A stretch of DNA of 63,671 bases, the filler included, from Lenisia limosa (taxonomy: Eukaryota > Protista > Breviatea), in assembly GCA_001655205.1 (NCBI GenBank). It is 8 parts of 8 records of this genome, joined end to end, with 100 filler letters (N's around TTAATTAATTAA, not from the genome) between each part and the next. Parts side by side here need not be neighbours in the genome. Positions count along the whole stretch, not along the records: positions 1 to 19,184 come from LPNZ01003031.1; 7 more parts are not named here. One strand, given 5' to 3'. This document shows, one piece after another, positions 1 through 19,184 of the stretch (the stretch's first letter is position 1; each line of letters starts with the position of its first letter). The translations under genes and the position numbers were made by a program. The notes beneath the pieces were generated by a model. That model was given only the letters and a program-made list of their open reading frames with translations, searched no databases and had not been told where the DNA came from.

Positions 1-781
1 AAGAGTGAGAGGTGAGTCCAGCTACTTGAAATCACATTGCTCAGAAAGACCAATCTGGAGGTTAGAAGGAACGGGAAACCTATGGAACATCACCCATGGG
101 GACAGGTGTTCAGAATAATACTAGCAGCCCAATAATTGGGCGGTTGAATTCGGAACAATAGAACATTCGATACCCCGGATGACGAACTTTCCAGAACGGG
201 TTCAGTTCACTTGCTATTAAAGTTAAGAAAAAAAAAATGGAATTTCCCTCAAATTTGAAATAAGAAATTTCACCCACCCACCACCCATCAGCAGCACAAG
301 ATTGGACGCCTTGGGAATGAATAAACGCTTCCGTTAATCCACTAACCAGAGAGGAATTCGTTTCTAGTCCAGACAAGTTGTAATTTGAAATTATATTTTG
401 TCAATATAAACCCTTCATTTGAATCAACCTATAGGTCATAGAATGAACTAGAATTCAGCCTAAATGTCAATTGGGAAAGAAAGGGAGGATGAGAAGGAGG
501 AGTAAGCGGTAGGGTGACGAAGAATAATGTCGAGAGNNNNNNNNNNNNNNNNNNNNNNNNNNNNNNNNNNNNNNNNNNNNNNNNNNNNNNNNNNNNNNNN
601 NNNNNNNNNNNNNNNNNNNNNNNNNNNNNNNNNNNNNNNNNNNNNNNNNNNNNNNNNNNNNNNNNNNNNNNNNNNNNNNNNNNNNNNNNNNNNNNNNNNA
701 CAGTGTAGTACACGTGTATGAATTATGGTATTCCTATTGTACACATCCATTGGGCGTGCAAAGCCTGAGCCGCTTGCATAC

Positions 782-3700
782 CGTACTCGAACACTCGAGG
801 AACACAATGTCGCTGCTTGAAGGCGCATAACCGGCATCAGCTATGGGGGCAACGTTCGCACCTGTTGGGGTTAGAAAAATCCAAGATCTCTTATCTTAGA
901 AAATGGTTACACCATCTCATTATAGAGCAGTTTTTGCTTCCACATACCAGCGCAGAAGCCACCAATAGGACAAGGGGTGCAGACGGGGGCGTCATCCAGT
1001 TCGGACGTGCGGTAGTAGCCCCTGGTGTAGAAATGAGAAACAGTATCTGGCAAGCCGTCTACACTATCGCGACGGAAGGCAGCTGTGTAGATATTTCACA
1101 GGCCTCTTGACATCATATGATATGATATGTACAAACAGTTCCATATTCAGACCACCAGCGTACTCGAGACATTTACAGTCATCAATGACTGTCGATGTGA
1201 CCCCGGAGGTACTGGAGAACTCAGGGCACTCCAGACAGAGCGTCGTTGGCGGCGTACGATAGTAGCCTTGGCGGCAGGCGGTACAAGGCTCCAGAAGAGC
1301 ATCGTCTCCTGGAAGATGAGTGCATTCCAGGATAGAAATGGACAAGATCAAGAAGTCCCTTACGTTAGCAGCACCACATACCGCTATTGGGCTCAGTTCC
1401 CGCGGGACACAGACAGGACCGGATATTCAGCGGGTCATCTTCGTTGAACCACAGCTCATATCTACATCAATGAGTCGAAGGTGCTACAACTACAGATTCT
1501 ATGTTCATTAGCGCCAAACAAATATCCAGGGTCCTTTTGCCTACGGTGTGAACTCGCTACATGTGCAATTGAGGACGTGGCTGGCGTAGTGCGGTGCCAC
1601 CATGTCGGAATGCGGGCACTCCTGACAACGCTCGTACTCGGTGTGGTAGTATTGCGTGGTGTTGCAGAGCTGCAGCGGTGAGCATGACAACGGGCATGAG
1701 ATTCCGAAAATGGGTAACACAATAGTTTTTATCGAGAACTAATTTTGAGAATTTCAGTCTGACGGGACTATTCGATATGTTCAAATACAAAAGAAGCAGA
1801 AAAGAGCACAATTACAAAAGAGGTGAGGTTTCATGTAACAAATGTCTACCCCCCCCCCCATACCTGGCAGTCCAGTTCCTCAAAGCCGTCCAGGAACATC
1901 GTTTGGAAGACGGTGTACTCGTGACACGCGCACTGCTCAAGTCCGAAATGCGGCACCATATCACTCGGGTCCTGTATTGTGATAATGGGTATCAGGGTCC
2001 TGTACTGTGATAATGGGTATCGTGGCCCTGCAGTGTGATAATGGGTATCGGCTTAGACCTATTCCCCTCTGTCGCCAACATATTTTCATTGCGTAGGTAT
2101 ACCCAAGTAGCTGGTTACACGTGTCCAAAGCCGTTCACATTATTACGTTTTTAAGGGATATTGAGTATAAAACAACACAATCATTTGCCTAACAACTCCT
2201 TTATAGCTCTACTCTCAGCACTTACGATACGTCCTCTATATGTCCCTCCCCACCTTGACATAACCTCGCGTATTGAGCCGGTTATTGAGGGAGGCTGAGA
2301 CTTCGGAGGCTTTCAAGGGCACCACACGCGTGTCGTTGCTACACTTGCAGTACTCAACATTCTGAAACATCATACCTCAGTCTTTGTTATTACGTCTAAT
2401 TCCTACCAGGAGCTCCAAAAAATCCCAAAAACGAGATTTTTCAATAATCCTTGACTCATAGTATTGTTATTTTCATGGCGCCCAACAACATCATCTCCTG
2501 CATATATTACCCCTTTCTCCTCACGTTTTCCTGAACTGGGACAGAATAAGCAGGGCACGTGATACAAGGAGTCTATACAGTCAAAATGGCCACAAGAAGC
2601 TTTGAGGCATCTCAATAAATTAGTTCTCTTGTTTACAACGAAAATGCAATTATAACACACTGGGTGCAATTGTTGAAGAAAGCACCAGCATACCACAGAA
2701 ATGGTCGGGCTCGCTAGGTACTTGTAGTCTCGGGTTCCACTGCAGGGGCTGCACCGATCTCCCCATGAGCTCATATGATACCTGTCGTCGTACGTTGTCA
2801 TCATCTCAATTCCAGTTCCTTCAAAATGAGAAACAATAATGGGGGGGGGGGGTAGAAGAAAGNNNNNNNNNNNNNNNNNNNNNNNNNNNNNNNNNNNNNN
2901 NNNNNNNNNNNNNNNNNNNNNNNNNNNNNNNCGATGCCATCAATCACAGCCTGAATAGAGCCGGGCCGGCGGATGGAGCAGTCTACATATTGCACTGTCG
3001 ACGAGATGGCTGCCGTAAACAGATTCGCCTAATGGTTAATATAATGGGTGTGGTAATGATGATTAATCGATTCAATGATGACCAACTCACCTTATCTCTC
3101 AAAGAGAAGCTGACGGAGTATATTCCAGAAAATTCGGGAACCATGTAAATATCTTCACCCTAATACAAGTAAAAACAATACAAGGTAAAAACAATACGAG
3201 GTAAAAACAATACAAGGTAAAAACAATATAAGGTAAAAACAATACAAGGTAAAAACAATACAAGTAAAAACAATGCAAGGTAAACGAGAGAATATGACCA
3301 TTATTAACCCGACCTGTGAGAAGGAAGCGATTCCCGTGTCAGGCTGGTGGGCAATCGGGGCCACATAGGACTCAACAGGCGGCGAGAAGATCACTGACGG
3401 CTGCAGTGCGTGAGGATAAAGCAATTAAAAAGCCCTGTAGTCAACTAATTGGCTACAGACCAAAATCGAATTTTCTACCATGTCTCTCGAATACGAGAGT
3501 GATGCAATGTAATCATAATCTCCAGGACTGCACCCCTGTGACCATGCCAGTCTTGAGCCCCCAGACTCACCACATCAGTGGTACTTGGAGCAATATCGGT
3601 AGCACCATGCGCCTGGGCCGCAAAGAAAACAATATCAGTCAGGTCCGTGGGGGCTGATGGTCAGATGTGTCAAAAGCTCAACGGTAGTATCTGGCAGAAG

Positions 3701-6700
3701 GTGTCCTCACCAGAGTTTATTCAGTTAATAAATTCAATCAAGCTCATACTTGGAGTTGCGAAAAAGAAGGATTCACCAGTTTGCTCGTTTGAGGTGACAT
3801 ACACCGGGGTATTGTCCGGGTACTCCGTACCAGCATGGTCTGTGAGTTTGGCGGAAAGCTAAAACGTAAAAACCGGGCTTGGCTTCTCGAGGGTCATTTC
3901 CAACACCCTACACACAGAAACCACAGCTTCCTCATAAATGACGCGGAAAGAAGACACATCCATTGGGCTTGTTGTGTCCTAAATCGGAATAATGACTCTC
4001 TAAAGACGTTCATGGGTTTTGAGGTGGGCGTGACATCTTGCAAAAGCCCATGAACACTTGCGCACCTGTTCGAAGTTGTTGAGGGAAACTTCCACCGGGA
4101 ACGTAGTGTTGACATTGGCAAGGTTTTCGGCTCTCTTGGTGATGTCTACAATGTAACCAGAAGAGACTCATGAAGAACATCGTAAACACCAACAAGAATA
4201 AGAAAACATTGCCCCCCCCCCCCNNNNNNNNNNNNNNNNNNNNNNNNNNNNNNNNNNNNNNNNNNNNNNNNNNNNNNNNNNNNNNNNNNNNNNNNNNNNN
4301 NNNNNNNNNNNNNNNNNNNNNNNNNNNAGTTGGCCGCCAGCCTCCTCAAACTCCTAAGGATGGTAACGAGGATTCCAGGCAATTATTATGAAGAAATTAT
4401 TCGACAAAATTGGCAATTAAAGTTTCTAAATTAGTAGTTCTGAAATTTAAATTACCCAAATAATTACAGCGAACACCCAATTGATTCAAATAAACCGCGA
4501 ATTGTTTATCATCATGATTCAATAATTCGTGCAATACAAACCTCTCTGCTGGTGAAATCTCCCAGAATGTCTCCTACAGCCACCACATATGAACCATGCG
4601 CTTCCACCACAAAGGCCTGAAGGAGGCGAGTGATGCGGAATATTGAAGGAGCCATATCAGTGTGGGGGGATATTATTTGTGAAAGAGAAACAGCAGCAAA
4701 CGTTGTAACTTCCATAGTCGACAGTGTGATCCGAGGTTCCCTTCAGGAAGCCTTCCCATGCCAAACAAGCGGGCTGAGTTACCTGGGAAGGTGAGGCAAA
4801 GGGGCTCGGAAGAGAATGGGCTTTGTGGAAATGACTGAAGCATGTCCTAACATACCTTGAGAATGCCCGGCAAAGCGCTGTAAAAAGATTGGCCATGGTC
4901 ACACGTCATGAAAATGGTTGTCTGGAGGTGAAAGAGTGGGACCTCACTTCGGGTCGGAAAATATTAAATCAATCAAGAAATCAATTCTTCTAATGTGAAG
5001 CTAATCAGAGGCTTCCCAGGAATAGTACAATAAGCAACTCACATTGACTGCACCGGTTCTCGTGGATGAACAAAGCCCCAATTTGTTGGAGTTGCCCGAG
5101 AAAAGCACCGTCTGTCCCGTGGTGGTGTTACTACAGGGTCAAACTGCTGTATTCAAGGGCCAAATGCTAGCATAGAATAACCTATCGCTTCTTATGAAAT
5201 ACGAGTCGATCATTGATCAACACAATCCTTTTCCACGGTCCTTCAGCCTTAGACCCACGTCTGGACGGCAGAAGTAGTCGGCCAAATGTTCTCGAATGCT
5301 TGGTTCTCTGAGAAGGCCGCAGCAGAAAACAGGGTGGAGTGTGCGACCATCTTTCTTGTGAGCAAGAGAAACAATTTGAAAATAACTGGTAGTTCTTATA
5401 AATTGAGAAAGTGAACCCACATTGAGAGAAATAGTCCCCAGGGAATGGGCGATAGTGTTTTGGGCTTCCTCATAGTGGCTGTGGAGAGTACCAGCCACAG
5501 TGTCCAGCGGAGCAACTAAAACGTGAGAAAGGCAGCGCATCGAGGCCACAAAATACAGGAATAGCGCTAAGGCCAAAGACACCGCTGCACCAACCGATGA
5601 CTTGACAGGTAGCTTCACTGAGTATTGGGGGCGTGACAGTGAACGTATACGGCAGATGGTCGTTGATGGTGGTATAAACCTGGGTTCTGAGATGAACGCT
5701 ATGTAGAAATGGGGGGAAAGGAGTATCTCATCGAAGATGTCCACACTACCACATTTATAAGAGTGCTGGTGGAATATTTTTTTAATTCACCTAAAAATTT
5801 GCTCAAGTTCGAATATCGCCATCACCCAATAACATCAAAATATAGTATACCATAATAGTTTATATGGAAAAGGAGCGAAAAGATGGATTTTTAGGCCCGT
5901 ACTCCTCCCACCTTTTTAGGCCCGGAAAAGGCTTGTGAAGCGAGATCTACCACTGAGAGAACCGTTACATACGGAATTGTGTTGTCGTTGTGAACTAAAC
6001 CGAAGCTACAGTGGTTAACATCGTGCTGGATCCATCTCATAGAGCCTTGGGAACAAACCTCATGGACACTCTATCAAAATTGTCATCACTTTTCAGCGAA
6101 ACCACCATGGTCATAATCTAAGAACATAAATATGGTCTGTGCAGTTGAGCAGTTACCTCAAAAGAGAGAGCCGAAATATCAGTCATTTGAGTTGTGTAAG
6201 ACTTTGATGTTGTGCCAAACTATAGGAGTTAATAAGAAATCGCTCAACAACATTCCTACCCCATCTTTACGAAACGTGAAAGTCCAGGGCAAGGTAGTTG
6301 GCGGACCTGTATTGTCAAACAGTCAACTGCATCACTTATATCATGCATAATATGACCCCTTTGAACAGGGAGACCAAAAAAAAGTACATATCATAGCTAT
6401 ATAGCAATGAGANNNNNNNNNNNNNNNNNNNNNNNNNNNNNNNNNNNNNNNNNNNNNNNNNNNNNNNNNNNNNNNNNNNNNNNNNNNNNTAGTATAATAT
6501 TAATTCACCCAATCATAGACATAGATATACCTTAAACAAAACTATCATTGCACCACGCACCCCCCCCCTCCCACTGTCCCAAAAGTGAAGTGTTTCAGCA
6601 TAGGGGAAAAGGCGCTTATTCGTTGTGACGCAATAGTTCAGATTTACAGCTGACGGCATTTCAGGCCGAACCAGGTACAGGTGTGAGGAACTAGATTGTT

Positions 6701-9700
6701 ACCCCAGCACTGTTTCATTATCGCGCATCTGAGTTTTCAGCAGTGTTTTATGGGTAGTATACATATGATATAGCATGCCATAGCTTATGATACAAACTGT
6801 ACACAATTTAATACTATCAAGTCAATATTGTTCTTGAAATTTCAAAATTGATTGCATAGTCCTAGTTTTACTGAAAAAAGAAACAATTATCCCGCACCAA
6901 CTCAGTTTCACTGCACGGTCCTGGGGAGAACCCTGTGACCTTGGGGTGTTCGTAGAAGTACAACTCAGTATAAGGTAACTCAGTAACCTGGAAGGTGAGA
7001 ATGGCAGCTTCATTTCGATTCATATACATAAATCCTCGAAAACAAAAGCCCCCCCCCCCCNNNNNNNNNNNNNNNNNNNNNNNNNNNNNNNNNNNNNNNN
7101 NNNNNNNNNNNNNNNNNNNNNNNNNNNNNNNNNNNNNNNNNNNNNNNNNNNNNNNNNNNNNNNNNNNNNNNNNTGAAGAGGCCCGAAAGACCAGCAGGAT
7201 AGTTAGCAAGGTAACATCTCCCGTTGGTCAGCGAGTATCTGCCCTACACGTATAAACAGTAGCAGAGGCATATTTCACTGTGATCCTAAAATGACTTAAA
7301 AAATTCGATTTGGCAACACTCCTTTTCAGGCCCAGTCAAAGATACCTCAAAGTGCCACGTTTCGTTATAGATGCGACAGCGGCCGTCGAAATCCGGTGCC
7401 GCCATATGGGCAAGGTTGATCCACTCCATTTGGTTGGTATAAATCATGATCTGTGTGGAAGGGGGTTACTGGTCTGCCCAAGTGAAAGTGGATGTGATGG
7501 GCTACCAATGGGAAGAAAGCAACCCACCGACCTGATTAAGAGGGTCAAGAATATCAGTGTAGATGACTCTGCTGCTTGAAGAAACTTCCCATGTGTAATG
7601 TGCTGCCAAGTCAGGGCCAAGTATTCAATAATACAAAGAAATGCGAAATGTGTCATCCTATCCACTTTAGAACGGGGTTTGACAAATGAATAAAATGGAA
7701 TAATAATATACAAGTACTACTATTATATGAGAGTTTAGTAAACGGTCTGAAGCGGAATCATAAAGTAGGAAAAAACTCCACTCATTCCACAAACGGTGAC
7801 AATAGAAAACAGTGAGGCCATCGGAGGTCAGAACTTCAACAGGGAAAAGGTCAGGGTCTGATTTGCACTCCTGATACGTTAGATCCTTATCTCATCTTCT
7901 TTCGTGTGTTTCAAAGATTATGATTATATATCATATGATATGTATTTCCAAAAAACAAGGATGCCCCACCGCAAAAGAAATACAGGCCGTGACGTTGTAG
8001 TTGATGGCATATCCTGGTCCACAAGAGCAATGTGGACCCAGACCGTCATTTTTGTAATTGGGCTTGCATTCTATGGTATGTGAGATGGACCTTTAACCTA
8101 CGTGTTGAGGCGGCCATTGCAACAACTTGTCCGTCCGTCTAGTGCGTGAGAAGGCGTTGATGAGCGTCATGTAAGGCTAGCCCGGGCTTACAAAATTAAA
8201 GGCTTCAACAGCCCCAGGCATAATAGACTGGAACCCTTCGCTTTCATACACGAGAGCAGACTGAGAATGGGATACCTCGGGGGAAACGGCAAGAGGTACC
8301 CTAAAATGAGAGGTTATGGGGGGTTCTTTATATTCCTAGCTCCAATACAGACTGTATTACAAAAGACATTCCCTTACGAGTAGGGCTTCACTTCGGTTCG
8401 AAAAAGACTGATAAAATATCGATATTTATCGAGGATTTATGAAGAAATTCAGTCTTTTTTTTTAACTGTAAGTGAAGCCCTACTCACGAGGAGTACACGT
8501 CTTTACTGTCGGTCGGGACCTCTAATGCCGTGCCCTTGTAGTAGGAGAATTCAACCGAAGTGGCCTTGTCTGAGACCACTGCAAAGTCCATGGTGCCTGG
8601 CGGCCCGGGCTACAGAGTGGGTTGGTAATTTCAAGAAACAATCCTTCACTTGTTTTTTTTTTGGAGAGGAAAGTGCCTCTCATGATCATAAATGCTCTTA
8701 TCTAGTTTCCAAAAGATGTAAAAATAAATAAATGGTAAAAGTAAAGCAACTCTGGAATGAATGTCCCAAATGAACTGGACTAGTGGCGTAACCCCCCCCC
8801 CCAGCCCACAGCCAGAGACACAAACGCCTCAGGGTCGAAGTCCATGAGCCATTCGGGAGTGAAAGTTTCGGTGGCTGCAAGCATCACCTTACCTCCGGAG
8901 GCTGAAGAGTTAATAATCAGGCAATATTTAAGGCAGTGGAAGATCTCAAACCTGTGGTGACAGCGATGGCGAAATACTCGAAGCCATCCGAGGAGTCAGT
9001 CAGCAGATGGATGCCGCCGCCAAGCATAATACCAGTGGCCGTGATTGAAGACCTTCAAAGGTGAAAGCCAAGCTATGGTTTCTGCACTCGATTTTATTGA
9101 TATATATTATATTTTATGATATGCCGAAATGTAAAATGAGAAGGTAATGATTACTAATTTCTAACTTTGAAAAATGATAAACCTATTATATTTTTCTTGC
9201 TACCAATGAAATTAAACATTCCAACAAACGCAGAGAAAGAAAACGAGAACGTCCTGTCCTCGGTTGAGGTCAGCTTCACAATCTGGTTCTTATTCATTGT
9301 CATCAGAAAAACCTGGACATAATCAGGAAAGGACAGAACACGTGGGGTCCATAATACCAAAGAAACCATCCTACTTCAGCGGTTCTCTCAACGATGGCAA
9401 GCGCAAACGGCGATTCATCAACTGCTTCATTGAGACCGAACGTTTTCGCAACGTCATTGTCATAGCGAACTTCACAAGACACTGTCGTGCAAACTGCTTT
9501 CGCAACAGTCCCGCGGACCCTATCAATGGTTACAAGTCCCAGATTGGACTCGCCAGAAACGGGGTTCTTCACGGTAACATTCGAGGCTTGGTCAACAAGA
9601 CTAAGCCTGACATTGGTTGAATCTTCGTAAGCAATGTAGAAACTATCTGTAACGAGTTCCTTTGATGCTTCCAGAAATTCGTTATTTACTCTGTCCACTA

Positions 9701-9826
9701 CAGTATTAGAAGAAGGACAGAACACCTTTCGAACTTACAGATCACAGGAATATTCGCTGCAAAGCTAAGGCCCAGCCATAACTGGATGGCTAGACACAAG
9801 AAGGCTATTTTACTGTTGCAATTCAT
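782..9826 (-). CDS. Gene A: large multi-exon cell-surface protein with signal peptide, long extracellular region and GCC2/GCC3 (ephrin-receptor-like) Cys repeats; 3' end unresolved (probably continues toward or past position 1)
   Basis: ATG at 9826 opens MNCNSKIAFLCLAIQLWLGLSFA (signal-peptide-like). Many GT-AG exons follow, e.g. DRVNNEFLEASKELVTDSFYIAYE, PKVTGFSPGPCSE (IPT/TIG-like), LCNTTQYYHTEYERCQECP, CTACRQGYYRTPPTTLCLECPEFSSTSGVTSTVIDDCKC, CTPCPIGGFCAG, ANVAPIADAGY. Not all exon phases were verified. Confidence 0.7.
1966..2049 (-). repeat. 3 x 28-nt tandem repeat spanning a 3' splice site of gene A
   Basis: Minus-strand units GATACCCATTATCACA(A/G/C)T(A/G)CAG|G...; the last unit opens exon DPSDMVPHFGLEQC. 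Confidence 0.85.
3166..3285. repeat. ~7-8 x 16-nt intronic minisatellite (ACAATACAAGGTAAAA)
   Basis: Read directly; on the minus strand the array ends at the acceptor TTGTATTAG|G. Confidence 0.85.
8381..8482. mobile_element. hAT-type MITE (family 1), full copy, 102 bp, in a gene A intron
   Basis: TIRs TAGGGCTTCACTT...AAGTGAAGCCCTA; 8-bp TSD CTTACGAG/CTCACGAG. Confidence 0.85.
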
Positions 9827-10080
9827 TACTAGTATCGAAGAGCAATCCCTATGATTAATTGTTTCGGCCCATTGTTTTCCAGTTGTATTTAATATATTCT
9901 TGTCATTTTAACCACACACATATTTCACCACTATTACACGCTGGAACAGAAGCATTTGCATGTGCCGAAACAAAAGTCACAATTTTCCTGGGGATGCAAG
10001 CAATTGTCCCACCAGAAAAACAAAAAATTGTAGAATTGATTGAAGAATTGAAGCAAAAACGACGACAATTACAGCGAAAT

Positions 10081-11696
10081 ATGGCGTATCCTCAGCAGCA
10101 GCAACAGGGATACCCCCCTCAACAAGGTTACCCACCCCAACAGCAAGGTTACCCCCAGGGACAAGTTGGAGCTTATCAACACTCTAAGAATTGGGCACAC
10201 CCCCTTTGTGGATGTTTTGACAACTGCAGTGTAAGTCCAAATTTCCAAAGTTCGCAATTTACTGTCCCCAGACATGCTTAGCTGGCTACTTCTTCCCGTG
10301 TTGTGCTCTTGGTTGGGCCAAGGAGACCTCAGACGGTGATAGTTGCATTTTATGGACTTGCGTAAGGTAAGAGCAGTGCAAGGGACCTCTTATCGCCTTT
10401 CCCGCGCTCACAACGACAGTTTATCTTCTTATTGTTGTGCACTCTGTTGTCTTGTTTCTTGGTACGTTCGTTCCGAAGTCCGTGAATCTCTTGGTAGGCG
10501 TTTTTTTGGTGTATCAATGGTATGACTGGCTCAATAAGGGGGTGAGGATTGCCTGTTATGCAAGAGAAAGCTGCAAGAATGATAAAATTACCCCCCTCCC
10601 TCCCTCCCACCCTGCACATCAAAGGAGTATTGTGAGTTACGCCGNNNNNNNNNNNNNNNNNNNNNNNNNNNNNNNNNNNNNNNNNNNNNNNNNNNNNNNN
10701 NNNNNNNNNNNNNNNNNNNNNNNGTTCGTTGACATTGCAGGACTGGTCCGCGGAGATGTTGTTGAAGAGTGTCTTGTCAACACCTGCTGCTATCCTTGCG
10801 CCGTCTGCCAGGTCGCTGCAGTGGGGGGTATGAAATTTTTTTAGGGCGACATTCTGTGAACAAAGCACCAGATCCTTACTTTTTGAAGAGTAAAGCAGCT
10901 AGGGGTAGAGGGGAATGATGATTCCGCTGAGCATATAATGAGCTTGTTTTCATACATTTCTGGTAACAGAACGCACATTTGCAACCCAGCTGAACCATTG
11001 AATGACCATTTTAGGAAGCCTCGGATGCCAAGGCTGCAGGCCATCGTCCTTTCGCCGTAAGCGGGCGCTATGGCTTGGTTGAGTTGATATGGTCCCGGTG
11101 TGTATCACTTCTTACCTCTCAGGCTCGTGGAGCTCTCCCCCCTCAAGGATATCCCCAACAGGGCCCTCCTCCCCAACAGCAGGGCGGCTACCCCCCGGTG
11201 AGATGACAGAATAAATAATTAATATCAAGGATAAATTAGAAGTATCAAGGACTTATCCCCCACTTTGCCTCCCCTTACGCTGTAGCAACAGCAACAAGGA
11301 ATGAGACAAGGGGGACCCCCTCCCCAAGGTTACGCTCAAGGCCCTCCTCAGCAGCAATACCAGCCTCCTGTAAGCTAACAGGTTCAGAGTTCTTTCTGAC
11401 CTCTTAGCCCCAAGGTGGCTACCCCCCACAGCAACAAGGTCCCCCCCCTCCAGCTTACAACGCTCCCCCTGGTCCCCCCCAGGTAGTCGCGTTTATTTCA
11501 ATCGGGTTTCCTTTGCCACTGATTGTCACTCATGTTTCAGGCCCAAGCCGACCCCTATGCCCAGGCCCCTCCTCCCCAGCAACAACAGCAACCTCCCCCT
11601 CAACAAGGCGCTTATGTAAGACTGGTTTTTGCCTTTTCAGCCCTACGCCACTGATAATTCCAGGGACAACCTTCAGCTCCTCCTGCTGCTTATTAA
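10081..11696 (+). CDS. PLAC8-family Cys-rich protein with Pro/Gln/Gly/Tyr-rich N- and C-terminal arms
   Basis: Spliced: MAYPQQQQQGYPPQQGY...WAHPLCGCFDNCS|TCLAGYFFPCCALGWAKE...YCCALCCLVSWYVRSEVRESLG|LVRGDVVEECLVNTCCYPCAVCQ, then short PQQG/GYPP exons ending GQPSAPPAAY-TAA (11694-11696). The WxxxLCGCFD and CCxPCAxCQ motifs are typical of PLAC8. Confidence 0.85.
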
Positions 11697-11884
11697 GCCT
11701 TATATTCCTTTTCAATGCATTTTTGACACCCCAATTATCATCTCTTCCCAAGCGCTCTTTGGTATATGAACAGACTACTAATGAATATACAAACAAAATT
11801 GATACAAAACATACACATAAAACATCTTTCACTGCTTCTTACATCTAAGGGGTGAGAAACAAAGAGCAGAAAACAAAAAACCGA

Positions 11885-14800
11885 TTATTCTTGGCTTACA
11901 TAATTGTTGCCTTGGCCACCCATGCCTGAGTTGTACTGGTTCATGTTGCCCATCATATTGTTGTTCATTCCCATGACAGCGTTGTTGTTCATCATGTTGT
12001 TGTTCATCATCATGTTGTTGCCCATCATCATGTTGTTGTTGTTTATGTTGTTGCCCATCATGTTGTTGCCCATCATCATGTTGCTGTTGTTCATGTTGCC
12101 CATCATCATGTTGTTGTTCATGTTGTTGCCCATCATGTTGTTGTTCATCATGTTGTTGCCCATCATGTTGTTGTTCTGCATGCCGGAACCACCCATGGAA
12201 GCGAAGTTGTTCTGTCCGTTCATGGAAGAGAAGTTGTTCTGTCCACCCATTGACGGGAAGTTGCCTTGGCCCATGGAGGCGTAATTGTCCTGCGGTTGCG
12301 GCATGGGGTAGTTGTTTTGCGGGGAAGGCATCGGGGCCTCAGAAGTCAGCATACTCGTCTCCATAGCACTTGAAGTACTAAAGGGTCAAATAAAGAACAC
12401 CAGCCGATATTTGAAGCTCTTGTGCGCCTTTGTGTCATAATCAGACCATACCTTGAAATGTCGATAGTTTCAGAGCCGTTGATGGAACTCGTGGCAATGT
12501 CTGTGGTGTAGCCTCCTCCTTGCATGTTCTATTTGATCAATACATTTCTCAGTGTTGAGACAAGTCACTCCCCCCCACCCCATCAAAGGAAGTGGCATAA
12601 GCCGTGCCGTAGTCTGCACTGCCCATTGTGCTGTCCATAGAAGGCATGGCGTGGCTGTCGAAGTTGCTGTTGAGGTTGGTGCTCATGATGGCGGAGGAGT
12701 CGTCTGAGATGTCGGCTGTGACAACCTCTTCTGAATCGTCGAAGTACATGTGTCTGTCCGCCTTGGTGCAATACGTGATCTTGAAGGAGGTTTGTCGTCC
12801 TGGAAGGTGACTTCGGGTCGCAGAAGAATGATGTTGCCCCCATCTCGCATACCAAGACAAAGGACTTCTCCATCGTAGATCGGGCATCTTTCCTTATAAA
12901 GACAACTTCCTAGAGAGGCAAAAGTCAGACCAGATCCGTTCAGGTTCTCTCAGTATCAACCCCACGTACGTTCTTTGCCTTCGTTATCGACAATGGATGT
13001 GAGGCCTCTTTCGGTCAGAGCTTTGACCACAAACTCCTGCTCGTCTGCGCGCCAGTAAATGGCGCAATGCATGCCTAAATGGTGAGAGCACAAACACGGA
13101 GAGAGGCCATGCCAATCGCATACGGGAAACAGTGTCATCGCCGTTCGGGTGGTCGCGTNNNNNNNNNNTTCGTCGAAGTACATGTGTCTGTCCGCCTTGG
13201 TGCAATACGTAATCTTGAAGGAGGTTTGTCGTCCTGGAAGATGACTTCGGGTCGCAGAAGAATGATGTTGCCCCCATCTCGCATACCAAGACAAAGGACC
13301 TCTCCATCGTAGATCGGGCATCTTTCCTTATAAAGACAACTTCCTAAACAAAAGTCAGACCAATTTAGTTCAGTTCTCTCAATATAAACCCCACGTACGT
13401 TCTTTGCCTTCGTTATCGACAATAGATGTGAGGCCTCTTTCGGTAAGAGCCTTGACCACAAACTCCTGCTCGTCTGCGCGCCAGTAAATGGCGCAATGCA
13501 TTCCTAAATGGTGAGATCACGAACACGGAGAGAGAGGCCATGCCAATCGCATACGGGAAACAGTGTCATCGCCGTTCGGGTGGTCGCGTTTGGAGGGAAC
13601 AACTAACTCACAACCCTGAAGTGTCAAGAGATGCAGGCACTGAAGCGCAACAAGACCAAAGAAAGCCCCCCTCCCACAGCCGAAGTAGATCTTCCGATCT
13701 TCATGGCCTTACGGGTTCCGACGTCGAAGGTTTGTCCCCTGAGGGCGCCTGTTTGGCCCTGTTTTGTCAGCCCCATATCAGAATTAACCAGACAAGCTGG
13801 CAAGGAACGGGTGGAGTTGATAATTCGGACATGCCAAGTTCTAAGTCAACGCAAACCTCGAGAACGCAGAGGGTGTCTTCAGGCCGTCTCTTCTGCTGCC
13901 TGGTAGTCGTACCCAAGTCGGCCTATTACGTATAAGAATGGCTGCATCCACTCGCATAAGTAACAAAGCACCCCCTACTTCGCCTTCAATAAGCTGCATT
14001 TCAGAGCACAGGGTTTCATCTCCACCTTCCTAATATGGTAAGTGAAGTTCATGTTAGGAAAGGTCTTCATTAAACCACTTACGCCAGTGGCAATGTTGGT
14101 AATCTTCCTGACTTCCTCTTCCCTTTCCTTCTCCTCAATTCGGGACATGATGTCACCCTTGTATTGCGGACCGGAGCCGAAACATTCCTAATATGGTAAG
14201 GCGTGTTGAAGACAGCTACACAAACCTTGAGCTTCCAGTAAATGAGGGCCATGGTGTAGGCCTCTTCGGCTTCAATGTTCTTCTGCTCAACTTCGCCTGG
14301 GGTGTCAGGAGGGCACCGAATAAGGCAACAACAAACCTCGCATGACCTTGACTCGATACTGCATCTCAATGATGATGGAGAAGAAGATTAGGCACAGCCT
14401 GAATGGTGAGGTGAAATACAGACTATGGACACGAATTTCTGAGCAAGGCGTACGTGACAATGATGGCGGCGATACAAATGACAATGGCAATTGCAAAGAA
14501 GGCCCAGAAGATGTTGTCACCGATTCTCCACAGAATGAAGCCGAAAGTCAGCACAAACACAGAGGACCCCTGAAAGGTTGGTCAACACATCTGGCGGTGA
14601 ACTGAAGATGGGAAGAAGCCTACAAGACAGATGTTTTCCAGCCCGTTGATACGCTGCGAGCGGTACGGCTCTGCCCATCGGTTGAGAAGGTAGGCGAATG
14701 CCTAGAGTGTTAAGGAGGCAGGGGGAGGGCTCGGCTTACCAATGCCAAGAGAGCTCCGGAGACTTGCAGCCATGTTTGATTGATGAAGAAAACCTTCGAG

Positions 14801-17800
14801 AACAGAATCATAAGCTATGAAGTGAGGGAATGCGAAGGTAGAGGGAAGAGGAAACCAGGCAGAAGCAGACCTTTCTGAAGATGACGACAAGCTCCCAAAG
14901 GTAACATCCATCAGTGTAACGCAAGTAAATGAGACCACAGAGGTACACAGACGAATCGGAATCCAAAGTGNNNNNNNNNNAACCGAATTAGGCAACAACA
15001 AACCTCGCATGACCTTGACTCGATATTGCATCTCAATGATGATTGAGAAGAAGATCAGGCACAGCCTGAATGGTGTGAGGTGAAATACAGACTATGGACA
15101 CGCATTTCCGAGCAAGGCGTACGTGACAATGATGGCAGCGATACAAATGACAATGGCAATCGCAAAGAAGGCCCAGAAGATGTTATCACCGATTCTCCAC
15201 AGAATGAAGCCGAAAGTCAGCACAAACACAGAGGACCCCTGAAAGGTTAGTCAACACGTCTGGCGGAGAACTGAAGATGGGAAGAAGCCTACAAGACAGA
15301 TGTTTTCGAGCCCGTTGATACGCTGCGAACGGTACGGCTCTGCCCATCGGTTGAGAAGGTAGGCGAATGCCTAGAGTGTTAAGGAGGCAGGGGGAGGGCT
15401 CGGCTTACCAATGCCAAGAGAGCTCCGGAGACTTGCAGCCATGTTTGGTTGATGAAGAAAACCTTTGAGAACAGAATCATAAGCTATGAAGTGAGGGAAT
15501 GCGAAGGTAGAGGGAAGCAGGAAAACAGGCAGAAGCAGACCTTTCTGAAGATGACGACAAGCTCCCAAAGGTAACATCCGTCAGTGTAACGCAAGTAAAT
15601 GAGACCACAGAGGTACACAGACGAATCGGAATCCAAAGTGTTACGTTGCCTATGACGTTAATAGGGTCTTAGGGGGGGGGGGTAATGCAATCAAGACCCC
15701 TCAAACATAAAGAGCAGGATGAAGAACATGATGGGGATGCCGACACCATAAATGACCAGGAAGGTGATGATGGTGGGCAGAAGGTCGTACCACCAGTCGT
15801 CGTAGCAAACGTGAATGGCCTCGTCTGGCATGAAGCGGTCCTCTCCATCCACTCTCTACACAGTAAAACAGAAAACCGACAAACCTTGCATTCGAAGAAG
15901 GAAACCAGCGTGTCGGCAAGGGTCAAATACGCCACGCCAAGCAGCGTAAAGTAAGCGTTGAATGAGCGGCGGAACATCTGCTTGATGTAACTTCCGGGGT
16001 CGATGTGGCGCGTGGGGCACATGAACTTGGAGACAAGCATGTAGATCAGGAAGATGNNNNNNNNNNGGCGTTGAAGGAGCGGCGGAACATCTGCTTGATG
16101 TAACTTCCAGGGTCGATGTGGCGCGTGGGGCACATGAACTTGGAGACAAGCATGTAGATCAGGAAGATGATGAAAAGGATGAGGAGAACAAGGAAGAACA
16201 GAAGGGGCAGCGACAGCTTCATCCACATTCTGTTTTCGAACGACATGTTACCGACGGTACATTCAGCCTGCGTTGTGAGTGCGATCAAACTTGGCCAAAT
16301 AGCCCACCTTGATGAACTCCCAGTTGAGGTTGAAGATTTGAGAGAGTTTAAACGTGAAAGTCACCTCATCAGGCCACTTCAAATCGAAATCACCAAACAG
16401 TCCAACAACCTGAGGTATCAGCAATTATGTGCACAACAAAATACATCCAAGACTATCTCAACCCTCCCACTTGAACAAAGTTGAATCCGACAGTGATAGA
16501 GGCGTAGTANNNNNNNNNNAAGCGACAGCTTCATCCACATGCGGTTCTCGAACGACATGTTACCAACGGTACATTCAGCCTGCGTTGTGAGTGCGGTCAA
16601 ACTGGGCCAAATAGCCCACCTTGATGAACTCCCAGTTGAGGTTGAAGATTTGAGAGAGTTTAAAAGTGAAAGTCACCTCATCAGGCCACTTCAAATCGAA
16701 ATCGCCAAACAGTCCAACAACCTGAGGTATCAGCAATTATGTGCACAACAAAATACATCCGAGACTATCTCAACCCTCCCACTTGAACAAAGTTGAATCC
16801 GACAGTGATAGAGGCGTAGTACGCGGCTAGGTTGTGAGGGAAGGAAAGAGAAGGGCAGCAATCATTCCATGCAGAAACATGTAGCGTACCAGTGTGGCTT
16901 TGAGCGGTCATTCTGAGCAAAATGGCACCCACAATGAAGATGAGAATGATCATGAGGATCAGGAGGTACTTGGCATTGTCCGGGCAGATCTAAGGAATGA
17001 ATACACTGCAAAATTGACTTACGTTACAGACGCCGTCAGCCTTGTAGTATCCCATAATGCAGTTGGTGCATCTGTCCCCCTCATAACCAGTAGCACAGGC
17101 CTCATCAGCACGTCCTGGGGGTGAGAGCCTCATTTCTATTCCAGATACCAACCTCCAAGACACGCCGCCGCCACCACGCACTGCAGGAATTCGGGCTGGC
17201 CGTTCTCCAGTGTTTCACCTACGAGTTAGAGACACAGCTGACTCACAACTCACCACTATCCCAGCATCCAGGCAGGGCCACGGGGTACTCATCACCGCCC
17301 GGACAGTCGCCACATGACGGACACTCTTCGCACTTGTTGGTGTCGGGTGACGTGTAGAACAAGGGACGGCACCAGCATCTTGGGGACTACTGTGTTAAAC
17401 ATATTGGCAAAGTCAATTCCTGAGCCCCTCTTACGCCCTCCGGGGAGTATGACGTGTTCGGGTTGTCATCGGAGCCATAGACACTGGAGCAAAGGTCGCA
17501 GGAGGAGCCGCCGGCAGTGGACTTAAACTGGTTGGCGGGGCAAGGGGTGCATTTTGAGGCGCCCTCATTGGCGGCAATGTATCCCGCTGGATGGTCATGT
17601 TGGCGGAACAGGACGAATCATACCAGGACAAGGGGTGTCACAATCGGGCTGGCCGAGGCTGGGGTTGTAGTACCCAGGCAGGCACTTTTTACACTCATAT
17701 TGGCCGACTTCAGAGGAGAACTACAGTGTGAGGGATGAAGGGCTTGGGCGATTTGCCTTGTATTCGTACCTGTCCTCTTGGGCAACGTGTGCATGCAGAA

Positions 17801-19184
17801 GCGCCAGCCAGTGAGTATCTTCCCTTGACACATTCCTAAAAAGTCAATTCACGACTGTTTCGGGTTTTCTTTCAGTTCCCTTGAAAAGAAAAGCAACAAT
17901 TCAGCAATAACGCATAAATCCGAGGACAGCAACACACCTCGGGGTCGACCTGTCCAACTTCGCAGTAGTGGCCATGGGGACATTCAGTGCACTCATCCAC
18001 AGTGGTGTTGGTCTGGGTGTAGGAGCCTGCTGGGCATGGCTCGCAAGTCTCCCATGACTTCTGCGAGTAGTGACCCACGGGACACGGGTCGGGGTTCTTT
18101 TGCCCCTCCGAACAGCTGTAGCCGGCCGGACAGTCGAGACAACTGCTTGTTAGACGCGTTTGGACATTGAACAATGAGACGGCAAGATATACGAAGCGTA
18201 CTAAGAAAGCCCGATCATGGGTGCGTAGCTTCCGGCAGGACAAGGCAGGCAAGTCGTGGCACCAACAGGAGACCAATATCCGGCTGGGCATGGCTACGGG
18301 TATGAGAACATGGTCTAATTCACAAGTCCAGTCCAGTCCAGTTCAGTTCAGTTCCTCACCTCGGGGGCGGTTGATCCTTCGAAACAGATGTAGCCCGTGG
18401 GACAAGGCTTGCACTCGCTCTGAGCCTGCTGGTCCTGGTAAGAGCCCTTTGTACAAAGAACAGCTTCGGTGGCGCGAGTGGCTTCGACAAATGAACCAGT
18501 CTGAAATATCAATCATGAAAACAGCAATGCTCCGCCAATGTGGCACGTGACATACCGGAGAGGGCTCACAGAGAGACGTGTTGCCAAGAGTTGAGAAGTA
18601 GCCGATAGCACAAGGGTCACAATCTGCTGAACCAGGCTACAACGTAAGGTCGTCATATGCACGGATACGGAATACGGAATATGGATCATGATAATGGCAA
18701 CAGCTCAGCTTCGCCAGCAGGAAACACAGGGAAGAAGCCAACCTCAACAGAGTGGAAACCGGCAGCACAAGGCACACAGAGGTCCTTGGTCGTGGCTCCT
18801 GTAATGGGTTGCATGGAACCTACAGGAGTCAGCAAACAGAGGACAATATATTGGCTCTACTAATAAATGGTACCATGACACCCATGACACGATAAACAGT
18901 CAAACCCACCCGGATAACAAACGGAGCATGACGCGGTTTGGTGGTTCTCGGTGTACGTTCCGACAGGGCAGAACGAGCAATGGTCCTACAACGTCAGCGG
19001 CAGCCGTCAAACAAAGCCCTCACCTGGCCCTCCATATCCTGGTACATGCCGGGTCTGCAGTCTGTACAATACTCCTGGCCGTCAGCCTCGCCATACGTTC
19101 CGACAGGACACGCCAGACAGTCGACGGCGCTGGTGGAAGCCGTCTCGTTGTTGTACGTCAGCATGGGGCAGGCGTAGCAGAAGG
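11885..19184 (-). CDS. Gene B: GCC2/GCC3 repeats + ~9-TM membrane domain (TRP/FLC PF06011-like protist family) + cytoplasmic FHA domain + Asn/Met-rich low-complexity tail; 5' end truncated by scaffold end
   Basis: Cys repeats (CLACPVGTYGEADGQEYCTDCRPGMY; CTPCPANQFKSTAGGSSC; CATGYEGDRCTNCIMGYY). Membrane region (FNFVQVVGLFGDFDLKWPDE, NLNWEFIKAEC, LVIYGVGIP, GLIYLRYTDGCYLWELVVIFRK, EPYRSQRINGLE). FHA (MKIGRS...DTVSRMHCAIYW...YDGEVLCLG). Tail ends NNYVSQE-TAA at 11885. Confidence 0.85.
12737..13588. other. Probable haplotype/scaffolding duplication (12737-13158 vs 13171-13588) around a 10-N gap
   Basis: Near-identical direct copies flank exactly 10 N. Exonic differences I checked are synonymous (ATC/ATT Ile); the larger differences are intronic. 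Confidence 0.8.
14315..15640. other. Probable haplotype/scaffolding duplication (14315-14970 vs 14981-15640)
   Basis: Direct copies separated by 10 N; a synonymous exon difference (TCG/TCA Ser) and small intronic indels. Confidence 0.8.
15955..16819. other. Two further probable haplotype duplications (15955-16036 vs ~16047-16156; 16188-16509 vs 16520-16819)
   Basis: Copies flank ~10-N gaps; synonymous changes GGC/GGT, GAG/GAA, CGC/AGA. Confidence 0.8.

Follow-up and report, generated by a model that had tools for sequence, protein, structure and literature searches.

FHA domains are the main dedicated readers of phospho-threonine. To our knowledge, in eukaryotes they are almost always carried by soluble nuclear or cytosolic proteins or by proteins with a single anchor helix. 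A gene of Lenisia limosa (Breviatea) raises the question of whether such a domain can also form the cytoplasmic end of a multi-pass surface receptor. The gene lies in a stretch of 63,671 nucleotides, filler included, joined from eight parts of GenBank assembly GCA_001655205.1 and called here the window. It belongs to the part taken from LPNZ01003031.1 (positions 1 to 19,184) and runs on the minus strand from 19182 to 11885; its 5′ end is lost at the edge of this piece. An earlier sequence-only reading had proposed that the gene couples GCC2 Cys repeats and about nine transmembrane (TM) helices to an FHA domain split over six exons. We found that the locus is one real, expressed, intron-dense eukaryotic gene. 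The order of its parts is Ephrin_rec_like repeats, nine predicted helices, a charged linker of ∼100 amino acids (aa), an FHA-like domain, an acidic Ser/Thr linker and an Asn/Met tail. Our best reading, which the sequence evidence makes somewhat probable, is that of a polytopic surface protein with a divergent FHA-like domain as a membrane-anchored phospho-Thr reader.

The locus was found in two small sequencing runs with the same organism label, one of polyA metatranscriptomic RNA (X1) and one probably of DNA (X2). In X1, an RNA contig of 892 nt with a depth of 31 aligned to the window with ten skips, all of them GT..AG on the minus strand. After duplicated sequence (see below) was collapsed, the ten introns measured 38–98 nt. 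None of the ten was seen in X2, whose contigs read straight through. The introns seen in the RNA contig are:

12529-12578, minus strand
12800-13286, minus strand, crossing a duplication
13344-13398, minus strand
13504-13554, minus strand
13616-13677, minus strand
13759-13856, minus strand
13923-13978, minus strand
14030-14082, minus strand
14188-14225, minus strand
14297-15003, minus strand

The contig starts 23 nt into exon 21, at the end of the last helix, passes through the linker and all FHA exons and ends in exon 31. The TM region and the FHA-like domain share one frame, and from exon 21 to exon 31 the parts behave as a single fused gene. Exons and frames lie where the sequence-only reading had placed them, and the RNA junctions reproduce its peptide exactly. 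All six of its FHA exons are joined in one transcript, which does not end before them. As it had also proposed, the GCC2 Cys repeats, the ∼9-TM region and the FHA-like domain share one transcript and frame, judged by PF07699 matches, hydropathy and RNA junctions. A second RNA contig (15830 to 15187) covers TM exons 16–20. In the tail, RNA contigs lie over 11900-12319, and one variant contig joins 12452 in exon 31 to the start of exon 32. At 12320-12377 (minus strand) one RNA contig has, in place of the opening 37 nt of the last exon, a sequence of ∼75% identity, and the 21 nt after it (seven codons, in frame) are missing. Expression therefore extends to a second allele or close paralog of the tail.

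The gene is interrupted by four 10-N gaps, at 13159, 14971, 16057 and 16510. Each gap lies between two tandem direct repeats that abut it exactly. The flanking copies are 423, 656, 102 and 301 nt long, with identities of 94.8–98.0%. We compared the locus with an independent assembly contig, L003 (ENA ERZ3820729 NODE_3337, 5352 nt), which was reached via a 66-aa open reading frame (ORF) product of the locus (P0003). The repeat pairs and artefactual duplicates are:

12736-13158 and 13170-13589: repeat pair of gap 1
12736..13169: artefactual duplicate of 13170-13589 plus gap 1; X2 skip of 434 nt, single-copy in L003
14315-14970 and 14982-15640: repeat pair of gap 2
14315..14981: artefactual duplicate of 14982-15640 plus gap 2; crossed by RNA junctions, single-copy in L003
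15955-16056 and 16068-16169: repeat pair of gap 3
15955..16067: artefactual duplicate of 16068-16169 plus gap 3; X2 skip of 113 nt, single-copy in L003
16209-16509 and 16521-16821: repeat pair of gap 4
16209..16520: artefactual duplicate of 16521-16821 plus gap 4; basis, the repeat pair and the L003 alignment

Contigs of the probable DNA run jump from 12807 to 13242 (434 nt) and from 15953 to 16067 (113 nt), so that they carry one copy. RNA junctions leap over two of the four duplications, and L003 aligns over its full length with the collapsed sequence (window 19020 to 12146) at 99.29%. Because of these skips, junctions and this end-to-end alignment, the gaps are artefactual; when one copy per gap is removed, the sequence and the reading frame become continuous. 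The divergence between duplicate copies is 2.5% in exons and 6.1% in introns, as expected for alleles. The 10-N gaps are haplotype duplications, produced by scaffolding two haplotype contig ends unmerged.

We built the exon model from RNA junctions, GT..AG sites, frame, the Cys-repeat pattern and conservation in paralogs. It contains 32 exons, 31 introns and 1319 codons with no internal stop; the 5′ end is open and the stop codon is at 11885. Introns are 29–112 nt long (mean 58), one for every ∼43 codons. The parts of the model are:

17032..19182, minus strand: exons 1–12, aa 1–468 of the partial model, extracellular Cys repeats of the C-x2-C-x2-G-x-Y/F type
15004..16989, minus strand: exons 13–21, aa 469–858, membrane region with nine hydrophobic segments
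13857..14296, minus strand: exons 22–25, aa 858–955, predicted cytoplasmic Glu/Lys-rich linker (aa 850–949), then the start of the FHA-like domain; all junctions in one RNA contig
13170..13758, minus strand: exons 26–30 (start), aa ∼950–1067, FHA-like domain
12452..12735, minus strand: rest of exon 30 and exon 31, aa ∼1076–1156, acidic Ser/Thr-rich linker, the acidic stretch reaching aa 1160; RNA junction 12529-12578
11885..12377, minus strand: exon 32, aa 1156–1319, Asn/Met/Gly-rich low-complexity tail and stop codon; open frame

RNA junctions in the membrane region are 15239-15292, 15371-15408 and 15650-15706, and the junction 15485-15540 was deduced from the length of the RNA contig and the GT..AG sites. 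Two more introns were placed by comparison with the paralog L001 (ENA ERZ3820729 NODE_491, a 23-kb contig). In L001, exon 20 ends at the identical split codon and is followed by GTGAGT, which favours a 57-nt intron at 15066-15122. The seven codons before the next intron differ from L001 by three synonymous and zero non-synonymous changes; these synonymous-only changes mark the codons as coding, so the intron at 15856-15884 is only 29 nt long. Very short spliceosomal introns are thus found at 14188-14225 and 15371-15408 (38 nt, RNA-confirmed) and, by this comparison, at 15856-15884. The intron-dense gene, in a haplotype-duplicated scaffold, conceals the domain from ORF-based annotation.

The FHA-like domain was read from the spliced exons. 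The FHA fold is a beta-sandwich of eleven strands. FHA domains have the hallmark residues Gly, Arg, Ser, His and Asn, and the Arg and Ser contact the phosphopeptide (PMC4037201). The exons and hallmarks found here, all on the minus strand, are:

13758-13678: FHA exon
13615-13555: FHA exon
13503-13399: FHA exon
13343-13287: FHA exon
13233-13170: last FHA exon segment (12799-12736 in the duplicate copy)
13695-13690: Gly-Arg
13558-13496: Ser-Arg-Met-His, split by an intron
13438-13433: Arg-Gly, replacing Asn-Gly

To build an FHA profile, we used a degenerate DNA pattern that led to actinobacterial GarA-type FHA genes. One GarA domain was then run by tblastn against plasmids, which yielded FHA genes from Actinomycetota, Cyanobacteriota, Deinococcota, Pseudomonadota and Bacillota. 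The final profile had 23 domains, taken from annotated FHA genes or from matches to a seed profile; Pfam confirmed 10 of the 23 as PF00498 (E 1e-10 to 1e-23). A profile of GarA sequences only (88 loci) was too narrow and was rejected. A protein search with an actinobacterial FHA query returned only 120 near-identical GarA-like proteins, which were useless for a broad profile.

The 23-domain profile matched the spliced protein once, at aa 943–1014, with 19.7 bits on the whole model and 22.6 bits on the cytoplasmic part. The E-value was 2.8e-8 for one sequence, and none of 5000 shuffles of the region exceeded 5.5 bits. The match spans three RNA-confirmed splice junctions. In hhalign the local probability was 92% (E 5.7e-7), with a score of 41.7 compared to a maximum of 18.3 in 100 shuffles. 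The N-terminal half of the domain alone gave 20.8 bits. Four of the five hallmark residues (Gly977, Arg978, Ser1002 and His1005) are in the right order and spacing. When exon 28 (34 aa) was searched in the ESM Atlas, 82 of the 100 nearest clusters were in FHA-carrying sets, with a score of 0.84 that serves as a lead only. These comparisons suggest that the domain very probably does belong to the FHA fold, as a divergent member. That it binds phospho-Thr has about even odds.

The hydrophobic segments of the membrane region are at aa 477–493, 527–543, 593–609, 642–658, 693–709, 742–758, 762–778, 796–812 and 825–849. We predict nine helices with the N-terminus outside and the C-terminus inside, which would leave the FHA-like domain in the cytoplasm. 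The loops predicted to face inward are rich in Lys and Arg (for example aa 610–641, with 5 K/R and 1 D/E), and the outward loops are acidic and bear Cys. The last helix is directly followed by Arg-Val-Lys-Val-Met-Arg. With the ectodomain outside, nine predicted helices and K/R-rich inner loops, the C-terminal part would be cytoplasmic, and hydropathy and the positive-inside pattern thus agree with the location claimed in the sequence-only reading. The kinship of this region with PF06011 (TRP/FLC), also proposed there, found no support here. Pfam at E≤10 gave no family, PF06011 included, for the TM exons or for P0001 and P0002, the only proteins returned by a protein search with the TM part; these pieces are only 34–180 aa each, which makes this a weak blank. 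The PF06011 model spans several hundred residues. The nearest Atlas clusters of a TM exon were unnamed eukaryote proteins (Haptophyta and Euglenozoa) at 0.92–0.95. PF06011 was the nearest named cluster, at 0.74, inside the chance range stated for the tool.

In the ectodomain, PF07699 (Ephrin_rec_like, or GCC2_GCC3) matched 18997-19182 with 37.6 bits and E 1.9e-9 (cutoff 23.1). A second match at 17875-18342 was at the cutoff (23.1 bits, E 6.2e-5). Among the RNA contigs listed, only 17250-17367 of the ectodomain is covered; its other junctions were inferred from GT..AG sites, frame and the repeat pattern. A Cys-rich module after the repeats looks EGF-like by eye and has no Pfam match.

The linker after the FHA-like domain carries three Thr-x-Asp-Ile motifs:

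12719-12708, minus strand: Thr-x-Asp-Ile
12507-12496, minus strand: Thr-x-Asp-Ile
12468-12457, minus strand: Thr-x-Asp-Ile

All three lie within 85 aa after the domain, and the shuffle test for at least three, given the composition, gave P=4.5e-5. Selection at the +3 position is common among FHA domains: Rad53 FHA1, for one, binds pT-x-x-D as well as pT-x-x-I (PMC4037201). The tail that follows has no Pfam match. About 110 of its residues (11885-12200) are almost only Asn, Met and Gly and are encoded by 15-nt periodic repeats. The RNA word depth at 11885-12200 is 6–8 times that of the rest of the gene, which probably reflects similar repeats in other transcripts.

We compared the gene with its reachable relatives. 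The L001 contig contains Cys repeats, TM exons 68–96% identical to those of the main gene, the linker and the first FHA exon (84%), and it stops just after this exon. The PF07699 matches of the paralog have E-values of 5.4e-9 and 3.3e-8. Where the FHA-like region begins, an intron (13759-13856, minus strand) is shifted 12 nt downstream in L001 (L001:12510-12630), where it follows Gly-Gln-Thr-Gly; in the main gene it precedes Gly-Gln-Thr-Gly, and the protein sequence is kept. The shift is either intron sliding or an independent loss and gain. An intron that moved while the protein stayed the same argues, from this pair of sequences, that the fused product is under selection. L002, a third contig and a short one, has TM exons only.

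Wider searches found little. HMMER with a two-row profile (TM exon and exon 30) against 1.84 billion representatives returned only three ORF-style fragments from one ENA assembly, none of them spliced or annotated. A protein search with the exon-28 region gave no candidate sharing three words, and JGI metagenome contigs scanned with the most conserved TM exon gave one chance match. A tandem paralog was looked for elsewhere in the window and none was found. The database proteins of this organism that we reached (P0001–P0003 and one ESM Atlas ORF of exon 26) are prokaryote-style stop-to-stop ORF calls. Such calls on eukaryotic DNA mean that the real proteins are absent from protein libraries. 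The paucity of relatives partly reflects search-length limits and does not prove rarity.

If the domain does read phospho-Thr, the stalk of Cys repeats would point outward, to the medium or to a contact partner; transmission or transport would be the task of the 9-TM body, and the cytoplasmic FHA-like module would dock phospho-Thr proteins and tether the receptor to a Ser/Thr-kinase pathway. Alternatively, the module may bind phospho-Thr in the Thr-x-Asp-Ile motifs of its own downstream linker, in cis or between molecules, which would follow the logic of the FHA-bearing ABC transporter Rv1747, and the Asn/Met-rich tail may add to clustering. The adhesion-type sensor or channel of the sequence-only reading, recruiting or gated by phosphoproteins, stays a conjecture. 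One may imagine a self-clustering receptor: a kinase would phosphorylate Thr-x-Asp-Ile, the FHA-like domain would bind the tail of another molecule, and, together with the prion-like tail, this would drive phosphorylation-dependent condensation at the membrane. We consider this last scheme unlikely.

Several observations weigh against a membrane-anchored phospho-Thr reader. The profile match is weak, since true FHA domains that were kept outside the profile reach 40–95 bits compared to 19.7–22.6 bits here. Single FHA exons had no match in Pfam (E≤10; PF00498 cutoff 20.7 bits) or in the PDB. The C-terminal half, which comes after Ser-x-x-His and extends from the Asn-Gly loop to the Gly-Asp-x-Ile-x-Ile-Gly strand, had no sub-profile score and was aligned only by global hhalign, with low confidence. 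The FHA identity given in the sequence-only reading is thus borne out for the N-terminal half, with Gly-Arg and Ser-x-x-His, and not for the C-terminal half. As that reading had noted, Arg stands before Gly in place of the usual Asn; this conserved, peptide-contacting Asn aligns to Arg1025. The Thr-x-Asp-Ile motif was picked post hoc. The topology comes from a simple hydropathy scan with the positive-inside pattern, not from a trained predictor, and four of the nine helices are only moderately hydrophobic. None of the RNA contigs listed bridges the 160 nt from 15186 to 15027, so the junction from the last TM helix to the linker rests on frame and paralog conservation. Going upstream, RNA depth also drops, from 31 in the FHA part to 13 and finally to ∼4. 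PolyA libraries usually show 3′ depth bias, which this decrease fits; it also fits an extra shorter transcript.

Three other explanations have to be set against the phospho-Thr reader. The FHA fold may have been kept and phospho-Thr reading lost, leaving a scaffolding module like the FHA-like domains of YscD (type III secretion) and EssC (type VII secretion). Those domains are not known to have the phospho-Thr residues. Such a loss would account for the unmatched C-terminal half, the change of Asn to Arg and a score far under that of true FHA domains. However, the Arg and Ser that contact the phosphate are retained, as are the structural Gly and His (roles from PMC4037201), and comparison of the paralogs shows purifying selection on the first FHA exon; we regard the loss as doubtful. 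It is quite unlikely that the FHA likeness arose by chance or very remote convergence and that the exons encode some other cytoplasmic domain. Exon 26 alone gave nothing informative in the Atlas, and the GarA-only profile reached just 3.6–4.7 bits, as did 7–18 of 3000 shuffles. In contrast, the broader profile and local hhalign both scored far above their shuffles, the exon-28 clusters point to FHA, and in the global hhalign run domain and profile stay co-linear as far as and including the Gly-Asp/Glu-x-hydrophobic-x-hydrophobic-Gly motif.

The receptor and the FHA-like part might also be mostly separate products, with an internal promoter giving a soluble FHA protein and the fusion as a minor read-through form. 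The higher RNA depth over the FHA part and the unbridged stretch are what this would produce. However, no stop breaks the frame at the boundary and the intron phases on its two sides agree, the 892-nt contig begins inside exon 21, RNA depth over the unbridged stretch is non-zero, and the order of parts is kept in the paralog. We judge such a split very unlikely. The membrane-anchored phospho-Thr reader is the reading that we retain.

Some features lie outside the gene. A plus-strand gene at ∼9859-11500 is convergent on the 3′ end of the receptor gene and encodes Gln/Pro/Tyr-rich repeats of the Gly-Tyr-Pro-Pro-Gln-Gln type; its Cys-Cys-x-x-Cys-x-x-Cys end has a weak, partial PLAC8 match (PF04749, E 0.018, under cutoff). 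About 10 kb downstream, on the same strand as the receptor, another Ephrin_rec_like exon (PF07699, E 3.7e-6) is found at 1067-1351 (minus strand). No similarity to the TM or FHA parts of the receptor gene was detected in it, so this exon belongs to a separate Cys-repeat gene. Elsewhere in the piece there are six longer N runs:

537-699
2863-2931
4224-4327
6413-6489
7061-7173
10645-10723

In the literature searched, membrane FHA proteins were found only in bacteria (EssC, Rv1747 and the Fha of the type VI secretion system), and no paper connected FHA with Ephrin_rec_like repeats or with a eukaryotic receptor of the multi-pass type; novelty was checked weakly. FHA-like domains in membrane proteins of bacterial secretion systems are the subject of PMC4925161. 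To that extent, the gene has known domains in an arrangement that we did not find described. If our reading is correct, an FHA-like module built into a large multi-pass protein would short-circuit the cell surface to Ser/Thr-kinase signalling. The receptors of this lineage are hardly known, and the domain is concrete enough to express and test.

TRP/FLC proteins (PF06011) combine an N-terminal domain on the outer side of the membrane with about nine helices and a tail in the cytoplasm, a comparable overall plan that is a resemblance only. Like the protist Ephrin_rec_like (GCC2_GCC3) multi-pass proteins, the gene has PF07699 repeats followed by a multi-helix membrane region; no FHA tail was seen in those relatives, and the ones reached were short fragments. 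Plant KAPP, SLMAP and yeast Far9/Far10 are eukaryotic membrane-anchored FHA proteins that have one anchor helix each and lack an ectodomain. As in these proteins, the FHA-like domain here would be held at the membrane and meet phosphorylated partners there. In contrast to them, it is appended to the C-terminal end of a 9-TM protein whose extracellular repeat region is large.

Rv1747 of Mycobacterium tuberculosis is an ABC transporter with two FHA domains; when its linker is phosphorylated, it undergoes compaction, oligomerisation and phase separation that depend on FHA (PMC8339232). Like Rv1747, the protein described here is a polytopic membrane protein with a cytoplasmic FHA-like domain beside a disordered, Thr-containing linker. 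Unlike it, Rv1747 is bacterial and has N-terminal canonical FHA domains, an ABC exporter as its membrane part and no Cys-rich ectodomain. The likeness suggests a possible way of working and not membership. If the self-clustering scheme were true, the Lenisia protein would be an independently evolved eukaryotic counterpart of the Rv1747 mechanism.

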